The position numbers were made by a program, and so were the translations under genes. From contig NW_003314278.1 of NCBI RefSeq assembly GCF_000143415.4, positions 1,098,122 through 1,148,914 of the forward strand: a stretch of DNA of 50,793 nt. Direction: 5' to 3'. This document shows positions 24,946-35,240 of this stretch, piece after piece. Source of the stretch: Selaginella moellendorffii. Lineage: Eukaryota > Plantae > Lycopodiophyta. Numbering within the stretch: position 1 is the first letter of the stretch; each line of letters begins with the position of its first letter. The notes beneath the pieces were generated by a model. The model searched no databases. It saw nothing but the letters and a program-made list of their open reading frames with translations, and had not been told where the DNA came from.

Positions 24946-25546
24946 TGCGGCGATTGTTCAGAGACACTGGCGGGGGCCCCGGGAAGAGTTATCTTTTCTT
25001 TTTAACAGCCTGCCGACCCTAAAATCGGTTCAACCGGAGATAGGGTCTCACAGCTGGCAGAGCACCGCACGTCCTGTGGTGTCCGGTGCACCCTCGGCGG
25101 TCCTTGAAAATCTGGAGGAGCAAGTGCTGAGCTTGCCCAGTCGTACTCATAACCGTATCAGGTCTCCAAGGTGAGCAGACTCTAGTTGATGGAACAATGT
25201 AGGTAAGGGAAGTTGGCAAATGGATCCGTAACTTTGGGAAAAGGATTGGCTCTGAGGGTTGGGCTTAGGGGTGTGTGGCTTGACCTTGTAGGCTGCTGGC
25301 GGTCTGCCTGAGCTGCTTGTGTGGCAAGGGCAGGCCACGGCGTGCCGACCTGGTGATGGACACAGAACACCCCTCCCCGCAGGGGGCATTCCCTAGGCAT
25401 CGAACAACTGACTCAGAACTGGAACGGACAAGGGGAATCTGACTATTTAATTAAAACAAAGCATTGTGATGGTCCCTGTAGATGTTGATGCAATGTGATT
25501 TCTGCCCAGTGCTCTAAATGTCAAAGTGAAAAAATTCAACCAAGCA

Positions 25547-25581
<35 letters not shown>

Positions 25582-25746
25582 AGTAGCCAAATGCCTCATC
25601 ATCTAATTTGTGATGCGCATGAATGGATTAACAAGATTCCCACTGTCCCTATCTACTATCTAGTGAAACCACAGCCAAGGGAACGGGCTTGGAAGAATCA
25701 GCAGGGAAATAAGACCCTATTGAGCTTGACTCTAGTCCAACTTTGT
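24946..25746 (+). rRNA. 25S/26S rRNA internal fragment (into domain V), degenerate
   Basis: ggcgggagtaactatgactctctta(a)agtagccaaatgcc, cccactgtccctatctacta, aagaccctattgagcttgactctagtccaactttgt. Confidence 0.95.
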
Positions 25747-27803
25747 TAAACGGGGCTTTTATTCACCAAAAAAACCAACTCTAGGCTGAGTTTCGTTAAG
25801 GCATGAAACCAGCAAAGAGCCGCGACAGAAAGTTTCATTGTGCACGAAACCAACAAAGAGCAAGAAGGGGGGTCTTCATGTGGAGGTACTTTGTAGAGAA
25901 CTCGTCGCAGACTTTTATCTCAAGCCATGGTCTTGAGTAGAGCCAGCAGAAAGATGATGGGAGAAGCTCCAAGTACCAAGGAACCAACCTTTACGACTTG
26001 AGAGTGGAGTTGCTGAAGAACTTGTCTCTCTTGATCCCTTAAGGAGAAACTCCAGGTGCCAAGGGGTCAGTCTTAAGAGGGGAATTGCTCACAAGCTTAA
26101 CAGCCCATGCTATCGCGATTGTGGAATCCAAAACCATCTGTCCAGCGGCGTCCACAATCACTTATGAGTACTTGCTTCTCTTGATCCCCTCAAAGGGCAT
26201 GCCTTACACCGTCTTTGTGCCTCGTTGAGTCTCTGAACTGAAGTGTATCTAACCATAAGTATTTTTTGAAACCTTGGAGGTACCCCATGGACGTACACCG
26301 CTCTCCCTTGGTTTCTTCTTGTGCACTTTCATATCTGCCCCCCACTGTAAGCGTCTGATGATCGGACCCTATTGAGACTCAGTACCATCTTGTCGCTCAT
26401 CGGTGTTGAGTGCTCTTGTTGGTGCCTTTGCTCTGGTCCATGTCTTTATCTTGAGTGTCTTCGTAGCTAGGGCCAAAAAACTCGTTCATCGTGACCACAC
26501 TAAACACCCTCAATTGTCATAGAGAAGTTGGATGTTTGCCCAAGTGTTGGTGACGAAATCCTCCTCATGTGGGGAGCCTTGTTTCCAAACCTCCACTATT
26601 GTCGACCTTGAAGAAGCCCACAAAGAGAACCACCTCCTTGAGAAGTCATCAAGATCGACAAACTTGAAGCAAGATCGCGTACGACACCATCACTTCAAGC
26701 TCCCAATCCTTGGGAAGAATCTCCTTACAAGTCTTGGGGATGAAAAGGATCTCCTTCACCTTGCTTGAGTTCACCACTGTCCATGGAGCAGGCCTCCAGA
26801 CCCCCAGAAAGAAAACCGTGGAGTAACGAAGGACAAGTCTAAGCAATAAGCCGAGGACTCAAATACTTAGATCTCCTTACTCCACCGTTTGATCTTCCTG
26901 AAATTCTGAAGGCCGACTCTCCATATCCAGCTCCAACTTCTTACCGACGTGATCTCGAAACGAGTGCATCAGCCAGGAGAACCAGCCGCTTGAACTTACA
27001 CTGGACTTCACTTGAACCACGAAACTTGAGCAGACAGATCTTGCAGCCCAGCTGTTAGATCTTCGTGAAACCTTGTAGGCGCAATCTCCCTAGCGTCTTC
27101 TAGCTTCTTACCAGAGCGATTTTCAGTCCAATGGCACGTAAAGCAGCCACAGCTGACCCATTCTCGCCTCAAACCTTAGCCACCCAAGTGCCTAGGATCA
27201 CTTGTATCTTCCTAGGTCTTTATCCAAACGGCCTGCTGCTAGTGACAGAGTGTCTTTGCCTTGTAGAACCCCAGCTGTGGAGAAGAAAAGAGAAGCACAG
27301 CCAGTGATGAGTGCCAGACGCTCAAACTTCCACTGGCCCATACTTGCTTGAACCGTGAACTTCAAGCAGATGGATCTCGCAACCCAGCCGTTATTTCTTC
27401 TTGAAATCTTGTAGGTGCAGTCTCCCTGATGTCTTCTAGCTTCTCACTGGAGCGATCTCAGATCGGATGGCGCATATAGCAGTTGCAGCCAACCCTTGCT
27501 CACCCCAAACCTTAGCCGCTGACATGACTAGCGCCACTTCGATCTTCTCAGATTTCAATCCAAATGGCCTGCAGATAGTGACAGAGTGTTTCCTTGCATT
27601 GTAGGAGCCCAGCCGTGGATAGAACAGAGAAGACCAGCCAGTGATGAAAGCAAAACAAAAGATCTTTCGATGAAGTGCCCAATATTGCTTGTGCCTTCGA
27701 TTCTTGAGGGGGTGCCTTTATTTAGCAGCTCACATGACTCCTACATACTAGATCTGGCCACAGAAGTCGACTCTCAATGCACCATCTCCTCCTCTTCGTC
27801 TAG
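25747..27803 (-). mobile_element. Unknown 2.06-kb non-coding insert in 25S rDNA; probable non-autonomous non-LTR element
   Basis: Flanked by identical ctctagtccaactttgt (25730-25746, 27804-27820); left-end motifs shared with the adjacent LINE; internal ~335-bp duplication; no long ORF. Confidence 0.7.
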
Positions 27804-27820
27804 CTCTAGTCCAACTTTGT

Positions 27821-30071
27821 CAATGGGGTTTTAATTTATCCTCTATAAACCATAGAGTCCGATTTTGACCTACTCGAAACCGGGAAAGAGTTCTTCAAGA
27901 TTTTTAGGGGGGGTGGGACGAGGGGGACAAAGTAGAACTGGTACTCGAGTCCTTGACATCCAATCTCCAAGCTTCCGAAGTTCCTGGTGTTGAACTCTGT
28001 CGACTCGGGGAGGTACACGTACCGTCGTTGCTGAACATGTGCTGCCAAATCCATATTGGTGGTTTCCACGTCCATTCTTCTTCTCCAGCCTCACTTCTTC
28101 CTCTAAAAAATGACCACAGCTCCTTCTCCTTTGCTATCTTCCCTTCCTCGCCTCGTTTGATCAGCGTGTCCAGGCGGGCCGCAAGTGAGATGATCAATCT
28201 GGACCAAACCTTTGAGATAGTTGCTCGAGCTGAGGGGTCCGTGTCATCGAATAGTTTGGCGCAGCGAGCCTTCCATATCTCTGCTAGTGTGCATCCCCGA
28301 AACGCATTGAAGAGCTCCTGGTGGAGATGCTTAATGTGTGTCCAAGTTTGGTTGAGTTGATCAAAGTGTGGGGCCTCGTTGTGTCTCCACTTCTATGCAT
28401 CAAGATTCTTTATTTTTCCCTGGATGAAGCTACCCCAGAGCACTGATTCGTATGTGATTGCAGCTCCTCTGGTTGACGTTTGTTTGAGTACCGTTGCTGC
28501 ACCTTCCCATACTTCTTGTGCTGCTGGACATTCCCATAAGATGTGTCACTGTGTTTCTATGGTGCCACAAGTCTTGCAGGCTGTGTTCGGGAGATGTATG
28601 GCCGCCAGAGAGGGAAGATGTTCTTGTTGGGCCAGCCACATGAAGTAGCGGTTCTTAGCTGACCAGTGTCCCTTCCAGATCTTGTTGATGCAATGTGAGT
28701 GGTTCCTGGAGTGGATCTGTTGGGCCTTTGCTTTCTGGATGAGGGAGGATTGAGTCAGCACCCTGATCAGTTTTCGGCCCAGCTTGGTCTTGTACTGGAA
28801 GAAGTCCTTGCACATGGTTCCTCTCCAATGCCACTCTGTGGGATCCCACTTGAGTTCATCCAGGGTTTGTTGGTGGAACCAGTAGAGGCGAGCATATTGT
28901 TTTTCTGGGATCAATGGATTAACGTTGGCAGTTTTTTTCTCCATTTGAATCACTCTGATCGGTTTAGCTCTGCTTATATCGGGGAGGTCCTAGTACTCAA
29001 GGGTGACAATGGGGTATAAGCATCCAGCCTGTCCTGCCTCAAAGATTAGTCCCAATGCCATATTGGGGAGGGCACATACAATCGACTTGTCCACCTTCCA
29101 CCATTGATGGTATTGGTCTTCTTGCAGGTTTAGTCGTTTAAGGCATGTGTGTTTGGCTGCTAAAAAGGCTGTCTGGAATTTACGCATCCTGTGTTCCGAG
29201 ATGGTTAATCTGTAGAAGGCACTGATTTGGTCATAGTTGTTGGCCGTCTGGTTGGGCTGGATCATGGTGTCTGCCTCTGCAAAGGTTCTCATCCTTGCTC
29301 TGTGTAGGTCTCTACATGTTTGGTCCAGGCCGCGATCCTCTGAAGCTCTGAGCATTTTACCTTTGACAGCGAAGAGTTTGCTCAAGAAAATTGGCTGCTG
29401 GTCCAGTTGTTCTTTGGTACGAGGTGGTTTACGTTCCAGCTTGCATTTGAATTGACTCCAGAGCTTGAACAGCTTTCCTGAGAACATGTGAGCCTTTGTC
29501 ATTTTGAGTTTGGTGTCCAAGAAAAGCCATTGTTCATCTGTTGCCCAGTTTTTTCTGGTGTGCTCGTTCTTGTCTAGGAGGACTTTTAAAAGTTATGCTC
29601 ACAGGAGTGTTCTCCAGGGTTGGTTGCCAGGCATGAGCATCCTCGTGAAAATCTTGAAGAGGAGAGCCTTGCATTGTTCTTCGATGTCAATAATATTGAG
29701 GCCCCCTTCGTGCTTCGGAAGTGTTCTTGACCGCCAGTTAACCTTTGCTCCACCACGTGAGATGCAGGAGGAGCCTTTCCAGACATAGGTTCAAATGAGT
29801 TGGTTCATTTCCTGGATCGTTCGCCTGTCCATGTTCCAGCATGCTGCCAGGAACCAGATTGCTCCAAGCAAGATGCTGTTTGCCACCACGCAGCATGCTG
29901 AGAATGATAGTTTTCTGCTCACCCAGAACTTGAGTTGATCCCTTAGTTTTGTAACTGCTTTTTGGTTCTGAGGTTCTGGATCATATTGGCGTCCGACTTG
30001 GAATCCAATGTAGCGGGTGGTCTCCTCCGTGTCAAGCCATTTGAAACCCAGCTCCGTGCCCCATGTTGGAG
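27821..30071 (-). mobile_element. 5'-truncated LINE copy 1 (RT C-terminus, zf-RVT, 3'UTR)
   Basis: Homologous to 30302-32545; bounded by target motifs 27804-27820 and 30072-30087. Confidence 0.9.
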
Positions 30072-30087
30072 TCTAGTCTGACTTTGT

Positions 30088-30285
30088 CAATGGGGTTTTA
30101 ATTAATTTATCCTCTATAAAAACATAGAGTCCGATTTCGACCTACTCAAAACCGGGAAAGAGCTCTTCAAGATTTTAGGGGGGGTGGGACGAGGGGGACA
30201 AAGTAGAACTGGTACTCGAGTCCATGACTTTCGATCTCCAAGCTTCCGAAGTTCCTGGTGTTGAACTCTGTCGACTCGGGGAGGT
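30088..30285 (-). mobile_element. Severely 5'-truncated LINE copy 2 (~200 bp 3' end)
   Basis: Same 3' terminus as copies 1 and 3; bounded by tctagtctgactttgt and tctagtccgactttgt (30286-30301). Confidence 0.9.
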
Positions 30286-30301
30286 TCTAGTCCGACTTTG
30301 T

Positions 30302-33300
30302 CAATGGGGTTTTAATTAATTTATCCTCTATAAACCATAGAGTCCGATTTCGACCTGCTCGAAACCGGGAAAGAGCTCTTCAGGATTTTTAGGGGGGGTG
30401 GGACGAGGGGGACAAAGTAGAACTGGTACTCAAGTCCATGACGTCCGATTTCCAAGCTTCCGAAGTTCCTAGTGTTGAACTCTATCGACTCGGGGAGGTA
30501 CACGTACCGTTGTTCCTAAACATGTGCTGCCAAATCCATATTGGAGGTTTCCACATCCATTCTTCTTCTCCAGCCTCGCTTCTTCCTCTAAAAAACGGCC
30601 ACAGCTCCTTCTCCTTCGCTATCTTCCCTTCCTCGCCTCGTTTGATCAGTGTGTCCAGGCGGGCCGCAAGTGAGACGATCAATTTGGACCAAACCTTTGA
30701 GATAGTTGCTCGAGCCAAGGGGTCCATGTCATTGAACAGCTTGGCACAGCGAGCCTTCCATATCTCTGCTAGTGTGCATCCCCGAAGTGCATCGAAGAGC
30801 TCCTGGTGGAGATGCTTAATGTGTGTCCAGGTTTGGTTGAGTTGATCAAAGTGTGGGGCCTCGTTGTGTCTCCACTTCCATGCATCAGGATTCTTTATTT
30901 TTCCCTGGATGAAGCTACCCCAGAGCGCTGATTCATAGGTGATTGCAGCTCCTCCAGTTGATGTTCGTTTGAGTACCGCTACTACACCTTCCCATACTTC
31001 CTGTGCTGCCGGACATTCCCATAAGATGTGTCGCTGTGTTTCTGTGGCGCTACAGGTCTTGCAGGCTGTGTTCGGGAGATGTATGGCCACCATAGAGGGA
31101 AGACGTTCTTGTTGGGCCAGCCACACGAAGTAGCAGTTCTTAGCCGACTAGCGCCCCTTCCAGATCTTGTTGATGCAATGTGGGTGGTTCCTGGAGTGGA
31201 TCTGTTGGGCCTTTGCTTTCCAGATGAGGGAGGTTCGAGTCGAGTTTTCGGCCCAGCTTGGTCTCGTACTAGAAGAAGTCCTTACACGTGGTTCCTCTCC
31301 AATGCCACTCTGCGGGATCCTACTTGAGTTCTTCCAGGGTTTGTTGGCGGAACCAGTAGAGGCGAGCATATTGTTTTTCCGGGATCAATGGATCAACATT
31401 GGTAGTTTTTTTCTCCATTTGAATCACTCTGATCGGTTTAGCTCTACTCATATCAGGGAGGTCCTCGTACTCAGGGGTGATGATGGGGTACAAACGTCCA
31501 GCCTGTCCTGCCTCAAGGATTAGTCCCGATGCCATGTTGGGGAGGGCGCAGACAATCGACTCATCCACCTTCCACCATCGATGGTATTGGTCTTCTTGCA
31601 GGTTTAGTCGTTCAAGGCATGCGTGTTTGGCTGCTAAAAATGCTGTCTGGAATTTACACATCCTGTGTTCCGAGATGGTTAATCCATAGAAGACCCTGAT
31701 TCGGTCACAGTTGTTGGCCGTCTAGTTGGGCTGGATCATGGTGTTTGCCTTTGCGAAGGTTCTCATCCCCGCTCTGTGCAAGTCTCTGCATGTCTGGTCC
31801 AGGCCGTGATCCTCTGAAGCTTCGAGCATTTTACCTTTGACAGCGAAGAGTTTGCTCAGGAAAACTAGCTGCTGGTCCAGTTGTTCTTTGGTACAAGGTG
31901 GTTTACATTCCAGCTTGCATTTGAATTGCCTCCAGAGCTTGAACAGCTTTCTTGAGAATGTGTGAGCCTTTGTCATTTTGAGTTTGGTGTCTGAGAAGAG
32001 CCATTGTTCATTTGTTGCCCAGTTTTGTCTGGTGTGCTCATTCCTGTCCGGGAGGACTTTCAACAGTTGTGCTCGCAGCAGTATTCTTCATGGTTGGTTG
32101 CTAGGCATGAGCATCCTCGTGAAAATCTTAAAGAGGAGAGCCTTGCATTGTTCTTTGATGTCAATAATACTGAGGCCCCCTTCATGCTTCGGAAGTGTTA
32201 CTGACTGCCAGTTGACCTTTGTTCCCCCTCGTGAGACACAGGAGGACCCTTTCCAGACGTAGGTTCAAATGAGTTGGTTCATTTCCTGGATCGTTTGCCT
32301 GTCCATGTTCCAGCATGCTGCCAGGAACCAGATTGCTCCAAGCAGGATGCTGTTTGCCACCACGCAACGTGCCGAGAATGATAGGTTTCTACTCGCCCAG
32401 AACTTGAGTTGATCCCTTAGTTTTGTAACTGCTTTTTGGTTCTGAGGTTCTGGATTATACTGGCATCCGACTTGGAGACCAAGGTAGCGGGTGGTCTCCT
32501 TTGTGTCCAGCCATTGGAAACCCAGCTCCGTGCCCCATGTAGGAGGTCTGCCAGGGGGGAGCCTTAGTCCTACCGTTTTGTGCCAGTTTATTTTTTATCC
32601 CATGGCCTCATTGAAGAAGTCCAGGTCCTTTTCGACGTTTGAGAGGTTCTCAGGTGATCCCTCCATGATCAGGCTTGTGTCATCTGCAAAGGCTGATGAT
32701 AGGAGGTCCTCCTTTGAGGCTTCGTTCATGTCCCGGAGAGCGGAGCCACAGCCTGGAAGGGGCATACCTTTCGGGCCCTCTGGTCGGGCGAGGTAGTAGG
32801 CCAGAGCATCCGCAACGAACAGGAATAGGTATAGTGCGAGGGGGCAGCCTTGGTGGACCGATCTTTCAAGTTTGAAGGGCTGTCCCATGGTTTTGTTGAT
32901 TGTAACCTTGCTCGATGGCGAGTGGTACAGGGACGCTGTCCATTCCACGAACTGCAGAAGGACTCCTTGCTTGATCATTATGGCCTAGAGAACTTTCCAA
33001 TCCACCTGGTCGTAAGCTTTTTCAAAGTCCAGGAGAATGATTGCAATCTGCTCGGCCATGTCTTTGGTGTGTCCTTGTGCCAAAAGGACTGTTAGGAGGT
33101 TGTCCACAATTTGCCTGCCATCCACGAATCTGTTCTGTATCTCCTTGATCGTTTCGCAGGGGCTTGAGGCGTGATGCCAAGGCTTTTGCTACGATCTTGT
33201 ACATGGTGTTCAGCATAGAGATGGGCCTCTAGTTCTTGAGGTGGGACATATCTCCTTTTTTTGGTATCAGCGCAATGATCCCATCCGTAGCTCCTTCCGG

Positions 33301-34620
33301 CCACTTCCTGGTTCACATGGTTTCTTGCCACATCTTGAGAACTTCTGGTCCAATCCATTCCCAGTTTTGTTTATAGAAAGCTGGTGGCATGCCATCCTCC
33401 CCTGGCATCTTGTCGTCCTTGAGGTCATCCAGGGCGTCCTTTAATTCTCGCAACGTGAAAGGTCTCATTAGTCTGGTGTTCATTGCCGGGGTGTACTTGG
33501 TCGGGATATGCTCTAGCACTTGTTCAAGTTTCTCTTGCCTGACCTTGTCCCATGGTTCCTCCTTGAAAAGCTGGGAGTAGTAGTGTTTTGCCATGTTGTG
33601 CATGTCGTTGATCTCTGTGTGCAGTTGCCCTTGTTCATCCTTCAATCCGAACATTGGTGGGGAGACCACTTTAGATCTTATGGATCAATAGAACTCCCTA
33701 TTCAGCGCAAGCTCGCTTGCATGCCATCTGATGTGTCCTGCTTTTAGGAAGGGTTCCATCTTGTCAGCCTCTATCCTTTCCAGTTGGCGCTTAACTTGGA
33801 TTTTTTGAGCTTGTAGCCACGGGTCATCTGGGTTATTGCAAAGGTCTGTGTTAATCGAGGTTAGGACTCTCCAGACCTTTTGGATTGTGTTAAAGACACC
33901 TCTCTTATCTTTCTGGATCTTGGTTCAAGCCTCCTGAGCGAGTTGAAGGGTGAAGGAGTGTAGGTCCCCCTTGTGTTTTTTCCATTTCTCATGCGCCCGG
34001 TTATTGTTGGCTTGCTCCTCAAAGAACTTCTTGGGTGTGGCAACTGGCTTCCTTGGGCCTCTCGATTTTTGAAAGGGAAGTGTGAGTCTAATTGGATGGT
34101 GGTCCGAGAAGTCCGTGTAGGTGTTGTTGATGTCCAACTTTCCCCCTTGCATGCACAGGTCCATGGTGAGGTAGAAGCGGTCCAGACGATGTTGTATGCC
34201 TCTGCGTTGACGTTCTTGCCATGTGAAGCACAGTTCATGTGTCACGAAACCTGGGATCTCATAAGTGTCGCAGGTTCCAATTTGTAAGAGGAACGAGTTC
34301 CATGCAAGGCGTTCCGCACGTGTACATCTATCCTGGATTATGCCTCCCCGTTTATCCTCCTCGTGGTCCACGAAGTTGAAATCACCGGCCAGGATCCAAT
34401 CATCGATTCCAGTTGGAAGACGACGCTGCAGAATTCGGAAGAAGTGTGCTCGTGAGGTGGAGCGGGATGCTGGGGCGTAGATGTTCAGTAGGCCTATGGT
34501 TCGGGCATTTACTTTTATCACTATCATGTGAGCACGTCCAGTGATTAGGATGTGGTGCGAGGTGCCTAGGGATTGCCATGGTCCTTTAGCGATGATGAGG
34601 GTTCCTCCTCGCCGCAAATT
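30302..34620 (-). mobile_element. LINE copy 3: L1/Tx1-clade ORF2 (APE endonuclease, RT, zf-RVT), decayed, 5' end missing
   Basis: NIYAP, AGDFNF, FTW..RLDRFY, SDHHPI (33925-34617); PGEDG, MLNTMYKIVAKALASRL, QGCPL, AFADD; CKTC..ETQRHILWECP. Confidence 0.93.
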
Positions 34621-34839: not shown

Positions 34840-35240
34840 CTACTAGAGGAGCTAGAGGAGAGCTGTTGTAGGAGGAGTGCTAGAGGAGTTGGAGGAGAGC
34901 TGTTGCAGGAGAAGTGTTGGAGGAGCTGGAGAGCTGTTATAGGAGGAGTGCTGGAGGAGCTGGAGGAGACTCAATGCACAAGGGGTTTTGGAGGAGCTAA
35001 AGGGTGAGAAAGAATGATTTGATGAAAATAAAAAAGAAATTGAAAAATCCAAGAGTAGGATTGGCAAAAGTACAATGTGGAAGAGAGTTGTTGCAGGAAG
35101 AGCACTACAGGACATGGAGGAGAGTTGCTACAGGAAGAGTGTTGGAGGGAGGAGATATGTTGCATTGGAGGAAAGTAAGAGCCACTAGAGGAGTTGGGCA
35201 CTAGAGGAAAATAAAAGTTGCTAGGTGGAGAGTTGGGCAT
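34840..35240. repeat. Degenerate GGA/GAG-rich low-complexity repeat
   Basis: ggaggagtgctagaggagttggaggagagctgttg units. Confidence 0.7.

Follow-up and report, generated by a model that had tools for sequence, protein, structure and literature searches.

What is the 2-kb sequence that heads a row of long interspersed nuclear elements (LINEs) in the lycophyte Selaginella moellendorffii, at the same nucleotide of a 25S ribosomal RNA gene as these elements and bounded by the same short duplication? The sequence, referred to here as element X, lies on the minus strand of a stretch of 50,793 nt (RefSeq assembly GCF_000143415.4, contig NW_003314278.1, positions 1,098,122 to 1,148,914), which was analyzed as a whole and is called the window; all coordinates are those of the window. 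From the letters of this stretch it had been proposed that X is a site-specific passenger retroelement, i.e. the non-autonomous partner of the adjacent LINE inside the ribosomal DNA (rDNA). We consider it probable that X belongs, as a decayed copy, to a Selaginella family of non-coding, non-autonomous retroelements 2.06 kb long, and that this family is copied by the enzymes of an L1-type LINE (APE endonuclease, reverse transcriptase and zf-RVT domain) favouring one site in the 25S gene. The evidence consists of the position and orientation of X, its duplicated flank, its lack of coding capacity, the resemblance of its 3' tail to that of the LINE, the existence of variant copies, and junctions in which one X follows another across the flank. 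The stack comprises the following features:

25190 to 25746, plus strand: decayed fragment of the 25S (large-subunit, LSU) rDNA; Rfam matches the family LSU_rRNA_eukarya at 25190-25692 (480 bits) and the sequence runs on to 25746.
25730 to 25746, plus strand: left target copy, CTCTAGTCCAACTTTGT, abutting the 3' end of X.
25747 to 27803, minus strand: element X, 2057 nt, non-coding, in the same orientation as the LINEs and antisense to the rRNA.
26970 to 27647, minus strand: internal direct duplication in X of about 336-340 bp (26970-27310 versus 27298-27647, 75% identity).
27804 to 27820, plus strand: right target copy, CTCTAGTCCAACTTTGT.
27821 to 30070, minus strand: LINE copy 1, 5'-truncated, about 2.25 kb, decayed, with a zf-RVT domain.
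30071 to 30087, plus strand: third target copy, GTCTAGTCTGACTTTGT.
30088 to 30284, minus strand: LINE copy 2, consisting of only the last 197 nt of the element.
30285 to 30301, plus strand: fourth target copy, TTCTAGTCCGACTTTGT.
30302 to 34613, minus strand: LINE copy 3, the longest (about 4.3 kb), with an APE remnant, reverse transcriptase and zf-RVT; its open reading frames (ORFs) are broken.

The 25S fragment terminates at the insertion site (25746), and a 17-nt string of the 25S, CTCTAGTCCGACTTTGT, is found four times on the plus strand, starting at 25730, 27804, 30071 and 30285. When matches with up to three mismatches were counted across the window, these four copies stood against 0.12 expected by chance, and none of 100 shuffles reached four. 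Every copy directly adjoins the low-coordinate end of a minus-strand element; since the remnants of the LINE ORFs lie on the minus strand, these low-coordinate ends are the 3' ends. The order along the window is X, LINE, LINE, LINE, all four antisense to the rRNA. The two copies that enclose X (25730-25746 and 27804-27820) agree in 17 of 17 positions, as the original prediction had it, and both carry a derived G>A change (CCGAC>CCAAC), so that the pair reads as the probable target-site duplication of X. This G>A change was also considered as proof of a true duplication; the argument is weak, because the CpG has been lost in three of the four flank copies and parallel decay is plausible.

Element X does not encode a protein. 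Each of its six frames contains 23 to 33 stops in 685 codons, a density that is random, and its longest open stretch is 93 codons, versus a mean of 122 in shuffled sequence and versus 162 to 221 codons in LINE segments of similar length from the same stack. Pfam searches with ten open pieces of X returned no family past the curated cut-off; an Rfam scan of 25700-27900 with E values up to 1 returned no family, including no ribozyme; and a search of X for transfer RNA (tRNA) genes found none. Three pieces of X were compared with protein databases (two by word index, one by a full HMMER search) and had no credible relatives; a single match to a 778-aa protein, made of nine short stretches with 30% identity (E 1e-4), was taken as low-complexity noise, and an exact look-up of the 78-aa ORF of X gave no match. 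The absence of a long ORF that had been noted from the sequence thus persists, and X as it stands is non-coding, with no capacity to encode a reverse transcriptase or an endonuclease.

Comparison of X by blastn and tblastx with the LINE, with the rest of the window and with five further LINE loci of S. moellendorffii (20 kb each; L001 to L005) revealed no match outside the tail except the internal duplication of X itself. The tblastx search suggested earlier for a decayed ORF was likewise empty against the LINE and the five loci, and the body of X shows no similarity to the LINE, in agreement with the first reading of the sequence. X is therefore not a recognisable piece of the neighbouring LINE. 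Two other origins were tried and rejected. X could in principle be a piece of the rDNA spacer or promoter of the window, but neither the spacer nor the start-site block resembles it, the 25S-5S spacer lying outside the window. It could also be the 5' region of the LINE (its 5' untranslated region (UTR) or ORF1, an outcome that had been named as damaging to the passenger idea), but X resembles neither the DNA upstream of LINE copy 3 nor the LINE loci, with no match in six other LINE copies or their flanks and with no full-length LINE among these. A similarity between the 5' part of X and the sequence that follows the flank in L004 was not significant.

The resemblance between X and the LINE is confined to the 3' tail, in which the following features can be placed:

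25747 to 25823, minus strand: LINE-like 3' tail of X, located by alignment, by a match of a LINE-only model (25748-25823), by Smith-Waterman comparison and by folding.
About 25785 to 25822, minus strand: hairpin module 1 of X, GCUCUUUGCUG-GUUUCA...CGAAAC-U-CAGC (folded as GCUG-GUUUCA...CGAAAC-U-CAGC).
25827 to 25863, minus strand: hairpin module 2 of X, GCUCUUUGUU-GGUUUCGU-GCACA-AUGAAACU, the second copy of the LINE-type module.

Read in the direction of the element, roughly the final 80 nt of X can be aligned with the tail of the LINE (about 60% identity over about 75 nt), and both tails have the motif GCUCUUU, a stem formed by GGUUUCG and CGAAAC, a U-rich stretch and a similar terminus, which is AAUAAAAGCCCCGUUUA in X versus AAUUAAAACCCCAUUG (in its shorter form AUUAAAACCCCAUUG) in the LINE. 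On the plus strand this appears as TAAACGGGGCTTTTA at 25747 for X versus CAATGGGGTTTTAA at 27821, 30088 and 30302 for the three LINE copies, a parallel that had been noted from the sequence beforehand. A hexamer resembling a poly(A) signal (AAUAAA or AUUAAA) lies about 10 nt from the end in both termini (in X it is AAUAAA, 11 nt from the end); a poly(A) tail itself is absent from every copy. The module of GCUCUUU and hairpin occurs twice in X, with a run of C just upstream, likewise in the LINE. Its plus-strand form, AAAGAGC, is found in X at 25814-25820 and 25855-25861 and in two LINE copies at 30157-30163 and 30370-30376, the LINE copy at 27821 having the variant AAAGAGT; a hairpin of the TTTCG/CGAAAC type precedes each of these motifs about 45 nt from the end. 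The two hairpin-AAAGAGC units described beforehand in X (25791-25820 and 25833-25861) were thereby recovered, together with their LINE counterpart about 46 nt from the LINE end. Independent single-sequence folds placed hairpins at matching positions, CCGGUUUCGA-GCAGG-UCGAAAUCGG in the LINE and GGUUUCGU-GCACA-AUGAAACU in module 2 of X, both with 5-nt loops of the GCA type. Compared with the LINE stem, the closing pair of X is inverted (A-U becomes U-A), and module 1 has U-A where the LINE has C-G; the only mismatch in this module, an A facing a C, is one that G>A decay would produce.

The strength of this resemblance was evaluated in both directions. A covariance model trained on nine LINE tails, X excluded, was run, unfiltered, over the entire window; below the three LINE tails, its best match was 25748-25823 on the minus strand, at full model length and 1 nt off the boundary of X, with 13.1 bits and an E value of 0.95, the next unrelated match having 11.2 bits. 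The Smith-Waterman score of the X tail against the LINE consensus was 40, compared with 16.3 +/- 3.2 in 2000 shuffles (maximum 30; z about 7), and, with the LINE tails set aside, it ranked first of 33,312 windows, the best unrelated place scoring 34. In a reverse scan of about 155 kb the X tail recovered the LINE tails of L001, L003, L005 and L004 among its best matches. What lends the match weight is its place, on the right strand and within 1 nt of the boundary between element and flank. In our reading the relationship of the two tails is real, and distant; it is convincing mainly by its predicted position and strand. As for the structured 3' tail originally proposed as common to both elements, a model built from LINEs only does pick the terminus of X, though weakly, with identity at about 60% and an E value of about 1.

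The partner can be described from nine copies, the three of the window and six more in the five loci. The ORF pieces of the window LINE are 83-92% identical to annotated S. moellendorffii proteins. Pfam recognised Exo_endo_phos (E 4e-6) and zf-RVT (E about 1e-3, below the Pfam cut-off), and RVT_1 was found with an E value of 5.6e-24 in the sister copy of L005; LINE copy 3 lacks the N-terminal third of APE and has no rDNA flank at its 5' side. The six further copies have one common 3' nucleotide and differing 5' ends, the signature of target-primed reverse transcription. Judged from these domains, the neighbouring LINE is assignable to the L1 type, with APE, reverse transcriptase and a C-terminal zinc knuckle, and with copies that end at one 3' position and are truncated on the 5' side. 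Its preference for the 25S gene is partial. At the 3' junctions of the copies outside rDNA (L001:10748, L002:10995, L003:11010, L005:11241 and L005:11778) the next letters are ACAA or ACAAAG, which are the first letters of the rDNA flank; because five of the six extra copies lie outside rDNA and are followed by ACAA(AG), the LINE is not strictly site-specific and prefers a short motif contained in the 25S site. Either the true 3' end of the LINE includes ACAA(AG), or its nuclease or the annealing of its primer may need ...TTGT. Two of the copies outside rDNA continue with the same longer string (ACAAAGGGTAAATAAAGCC...); the LINE seems to have a second repeated target. It was also observed that LINE copy 3 (window 34613) and the L001 copy (L001:6429) lose their similarity at the same nucleotide, inside APE (about position 69 of 225 in the Pfam profile), with unrelated DNA upstream; this common break may represent a subfamily that spread after losing its 5' part, or a hot spot of truncation.

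Further copies of X were sought among public contigs from four runs of four studies, which were placed on window 25730-28330. In all four runs X is covered almost end to end, by contigs that fall into several variant classes ranging from more than 99% to less than 90% identity; in one run 26 contigs have at least 99%, 44 have 95-99%, 33 have 90-95% and 2 have lower identity, with at most six different contigs per place. The differences are mainly of the kind in which an A of the window is read as G and a T as C (e.g. 29 and 24 versus 8 and 9 in the opposite direction), which indicates that the X of the window is a member decayed by C>T and G>A changes and that decay has gone less far in the commoner copies. 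The copy in the window is a fossil. In two runs, from two differently labelled organisms, contigs join 27803 to 25731, that is, the 5' end of one X, the flank and the 3' end of the next; one of these X-flank-X junctions carries 7 extra letters. Such junctions imply that X is repeated head to tail at one and the same flank, each time as a full-length unit with the same ends. The variant contigs in four runs and the array junction in two refute the notion that X is single-copy filler. Contigs of the family cover the two halves of the internal duplication separately, and around 26372-26481 they break or diverge in two runs, leaving loose ends on both sides; this is a variable or indel-rich segment of the family. 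The 5'-truncated X copies that had been hoped for were not found in these contigs, nor was any X copy found in the five fetched LINE loci; no copy was seen at an unrelated site, which is a weak test, as no genome-wide DNA search was part of it.

The depth of these contigs provides a lead on expression. In three runs (X1, X8 and X9, whose types were guessed as RNA or are untyped) the word depths of X-like contigs range from about 100 to about 10,000, and in the same runs no contig lies over the adjacent 500 nt of LINE, despite the presence of at least nine genomic LINE copies at about 90% identity; in the fourth, large run X and LINE are both covered at a depth of 2-10. The depth would fit strong transcription of the X family, the alternative being a DNA copy number far above that of the LINE, and the contigs carry no strand. 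More far-reaching, and only tentatively put forward, is the picture of X as a long non-coding retroelement family, alive and transcribed in abundance, that is parasitic on a plant L1-type LINE with antisense homing into 25S rDNA, the pair being largely confined to one nucleotide of the rRNA gene and the passenger being far more expressed than its driver.

Other arrangements of the 17-nt flank were observed in this material. At L004:11000-11040 two flank copies are only 8 nt apart (GAGAGAGG between them), and the loose ends of run X9 at window 25742 show two flank copies 2 nt apart (CA); these look like abortive insertions in which the target was duplicated and almost no element was left. At L004:11140-11300 a flank pair is followed by about 100 nt of purine-rich sequence and then by an antisense piece of an apparently different 25S region (judged by eye), which suggests further rearranged rDNA fragments at LINE stacks.

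Several points weigh against X being a passenger of this LINE. The tail match amounts to about 60% identity with a model E value of about 1, and in the reverse scan one unrelated place of the window scored equally, at 40. All nine LINE copies are broken, so that no active driver is among them, and of the six extra ones only the L004 copy adjoins the rDNA string, the other five lying outside rDNA. The 5' end of X has no similarity to LINE 5' regions in a comparison that included no full-length LINE 5' end. What can be said of copy number, targets and 5' truncations of X rests on one contig placement, and no 5'-truncated copy is evident in the four runs. Moreover, copies in rDNA arrays can multiply by recombination without new retrotransposition.

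This last point leads to the alternative that survives best, which we nevertheless hold to be unlikely: X would have arisen from a single event, e.g. a jump of the LINE reverse transcriptase onto an abundant cellular RNA or one insertion, and would have multiplied thereafter only by rDNA recombination or segmental duplication, without being self-propagating. rDNA arrays homogenise inserted units, and the very deep X-like contigs of three runs without LINE are what an abundant RNA or many rDNA units would give; template jumps by rDNA LINEs are documented (PMC3414825). However, duplication of whole rDNA units does not yield head-to-tail junctions of X, 17 nt and X; the 7 extra letters at one junction are of a kind common at LINE 5' junctions; and the tail of X, situated at its true 3' end with a variant terminus of its own and a duplicated module, suggests an independent element.

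Slightly less likely still is that X is the 5'-truncated and decayed 3' part (a long 3' UTR or a ruined ORF) of another autonomous LINE family inserting at the same site, i.e. a sister LINE and not a passenger. The tail of X is indeed related to that of the neighbouring LINE yet clearly distinct, and in a copy as decayed as that of the window an ORF could have been lost. Against this origin, truncation points vary, whereas the 5' end of X, 27803, recurs beside the flank in two other runs; stops are random in every frame of X, whereas LINE pieces of the same stack keep their long open stretches; and neither Pfam nor tblastx gave any signal of reverse transcriptase, APE or zf-RVT in X. That the tail resemblance is due to chance, X being unrelated DNA (spacer or another transposon fragment) trapped between flank copies by a rearrangement of the stack, is very unlikely: unrelated places score almost as high as X under a model with an E value of about 1 and the orphan rDNA unit at this locus has been rearranged, with a deletion inside it between 18S and 25S, but the best non-LINE match of the model falls on the one predicted strand and within 1 nt of the boundary among about 100,000 possible positions, the flanks are exact, and the X-flank-X junction recurs in other runs.

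The reading of X as a site-specific passenger is supported, none of the three outcomes at odds with it having been found when they were probed, and a mechanism may be envisaged for its mobilisation in trans. The RNA of X, corresponding to the minus strand of the window, would end in a tail of about 80-125 nt with one or two modules of GCUCUUU and a GGUUUCG...CGAAAC hairpin, and its terminus, AAUAAAAGCCCCGUUUA, resembles that of the LINE, AUUAAAACCCCAUUG. The LINE protein would bind the X tail in trans. It would nick the rRNA-sense strand after ...CTTTGT and prime reverse transcription on the 3' end of the RNA; a second nick 17 bp away would produce the 17-bp target-site duplication. The order of the nicks and the identity of the driver are those that we consider plausible: the driver may be the adjacent LINE or a sister LINE family, the tail of the adjacent LINE being only a distant match. 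Given that X inserted beside the 3' end of a LINE, or a LINE beside X, the sequence downstream of the nick would not be required. Each insertion would re-create the site beside the upstream 25S sequence, and because the site is regenerated each time, the elements would pile up head to tail in one direction.

The 25S fragment is part of an orphan, decayed rDNA unit of plant type that occupies window 20320-25746 and includes spacer sub-repeats; its 5S gene lies upstream of the 18S, which is the L-type arrangement, and an internal deletion joins the 18S fragment to 25S domain fragments. In addition to the 25S fragment given above, it contains:

20320 to 20438: 5S gene, by Rfam match.
24336 to 24997: 18S fragment, by Rfam small-subunit (SSU) match, fused to the 25S fragments.

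Many CpG>TpG/CpA changes can be read from the 25S sequence of the window. The unit is flanked by ordinary genes, and a degenerate GGAGGAGCTG-like repeat block, with no matches in the fetched loci, occupies 34850-35200, just past the 5' side of LINE copy 3.

The animal rDNA LINEs (R1, R2 and their relatives) resemble the elements described here in their repeated insertion at one exact nucleotide of the large-subunit gene and in their 5'-truncated copies. On our reading, the site used by X and the LINE lies downstream of both the R2 and the R1 site, by roughly 165 bp and roughly 90 bp, respectively. Unlike R1 and R2, the Selaginella elements are inserted antisense, and ACAA(AG) sites outside rDNA serve the LINE as further targets. 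Non-coding, non-autonomous elements at the rDNA site of a site-specific LINE are represented in Drosophila by the R2 short internally deleted elements (SIDEs) and by R2/R1 hybrid SIDEs (Eickbush & Eickbush 2012, PMC3414825). Like X, SIDEs have the target-site duplication of the LINE and LINE 3' end sequences, which are thought to be recognised by the LINE protein; unlike X, they are short internal-deletion derivatives that carry the R2 5' ribozyme, are inserted in sense orientation and are co-transcribed with the 28S rRNA (PMC3414825). In contrast, X is 2 kb long, has a body unrelated to the LINE and no ribozyme that our searches found, is antisense to the rRNA and would be served by an APE-type, L1-like driver in a plant; only its 3' end (about 80-125 nt) is LINE-like, no ribozyme family was recognised in it, and no full-length LINE 5' end was part of the comparison. 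A second group of models are the stringent pairs of short interspersed nuclear elements (SINEs) and LINEs, for instance the SINEs headed by small nuclear RNA (snRNA) that are treated alongside Tx1 LINEs (PMC4494074). Such pairs share with X a partner-like tail, a stem-loop near the 3' end and the lack of a poly(A) tail. X differs from them in having no tRNA, 7SL, 5S or snRNA head, in its length of about 2 kb versus less than 0.7 kb, and in being tied to one rDNA site. A SINE in the strict sense has an RNA polymerase III head and fewer than about 700 nt, and X has neither. Taken broadly as a LINE-dependent element of the SINE or SIDE kind, X has three of the expected attributes: no reverse transcriptase or endonuclease capacity, a 3' end common with the LINE (a weak match at the predicted position), and the same target, strand and duplication.

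Pairs of autonomous and non-autonomous elements in rDNA are known from animals, and we found no report of one in plant ribosomal genes. A table of transposable elements in rDNA in a 2024 review lists no plant LINE inside the 26S gene (PMC10946416), and the literature searched, Repbase and subscription journals aside, contained neither a site-specific LINE in a plant 26S gene nor such a passenger.

Animals have so far supplied the main natural models for RNA-guided insertion at safe genomic sites, namely site-specific LINEs and their hitchhikers. With a pair from a plant, this set would gain an APE-type enzyme recognising a short rDNA site in antisense orientation, and a compact candidate module for RNA recognition (GCUCUUU, the hairpin and the C-rich terminus) that could be defined by comparing driver and passenger. 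The value would lie in the X family, with its compact tail module and its possible high expression, rather than in the fossil copy of the window. Such a pair would also test whether plant L1-type LINEs are stringent, i.e. recognise their own tail, and it would explain the head-to-tail stacks of retroelements in Selaginella.

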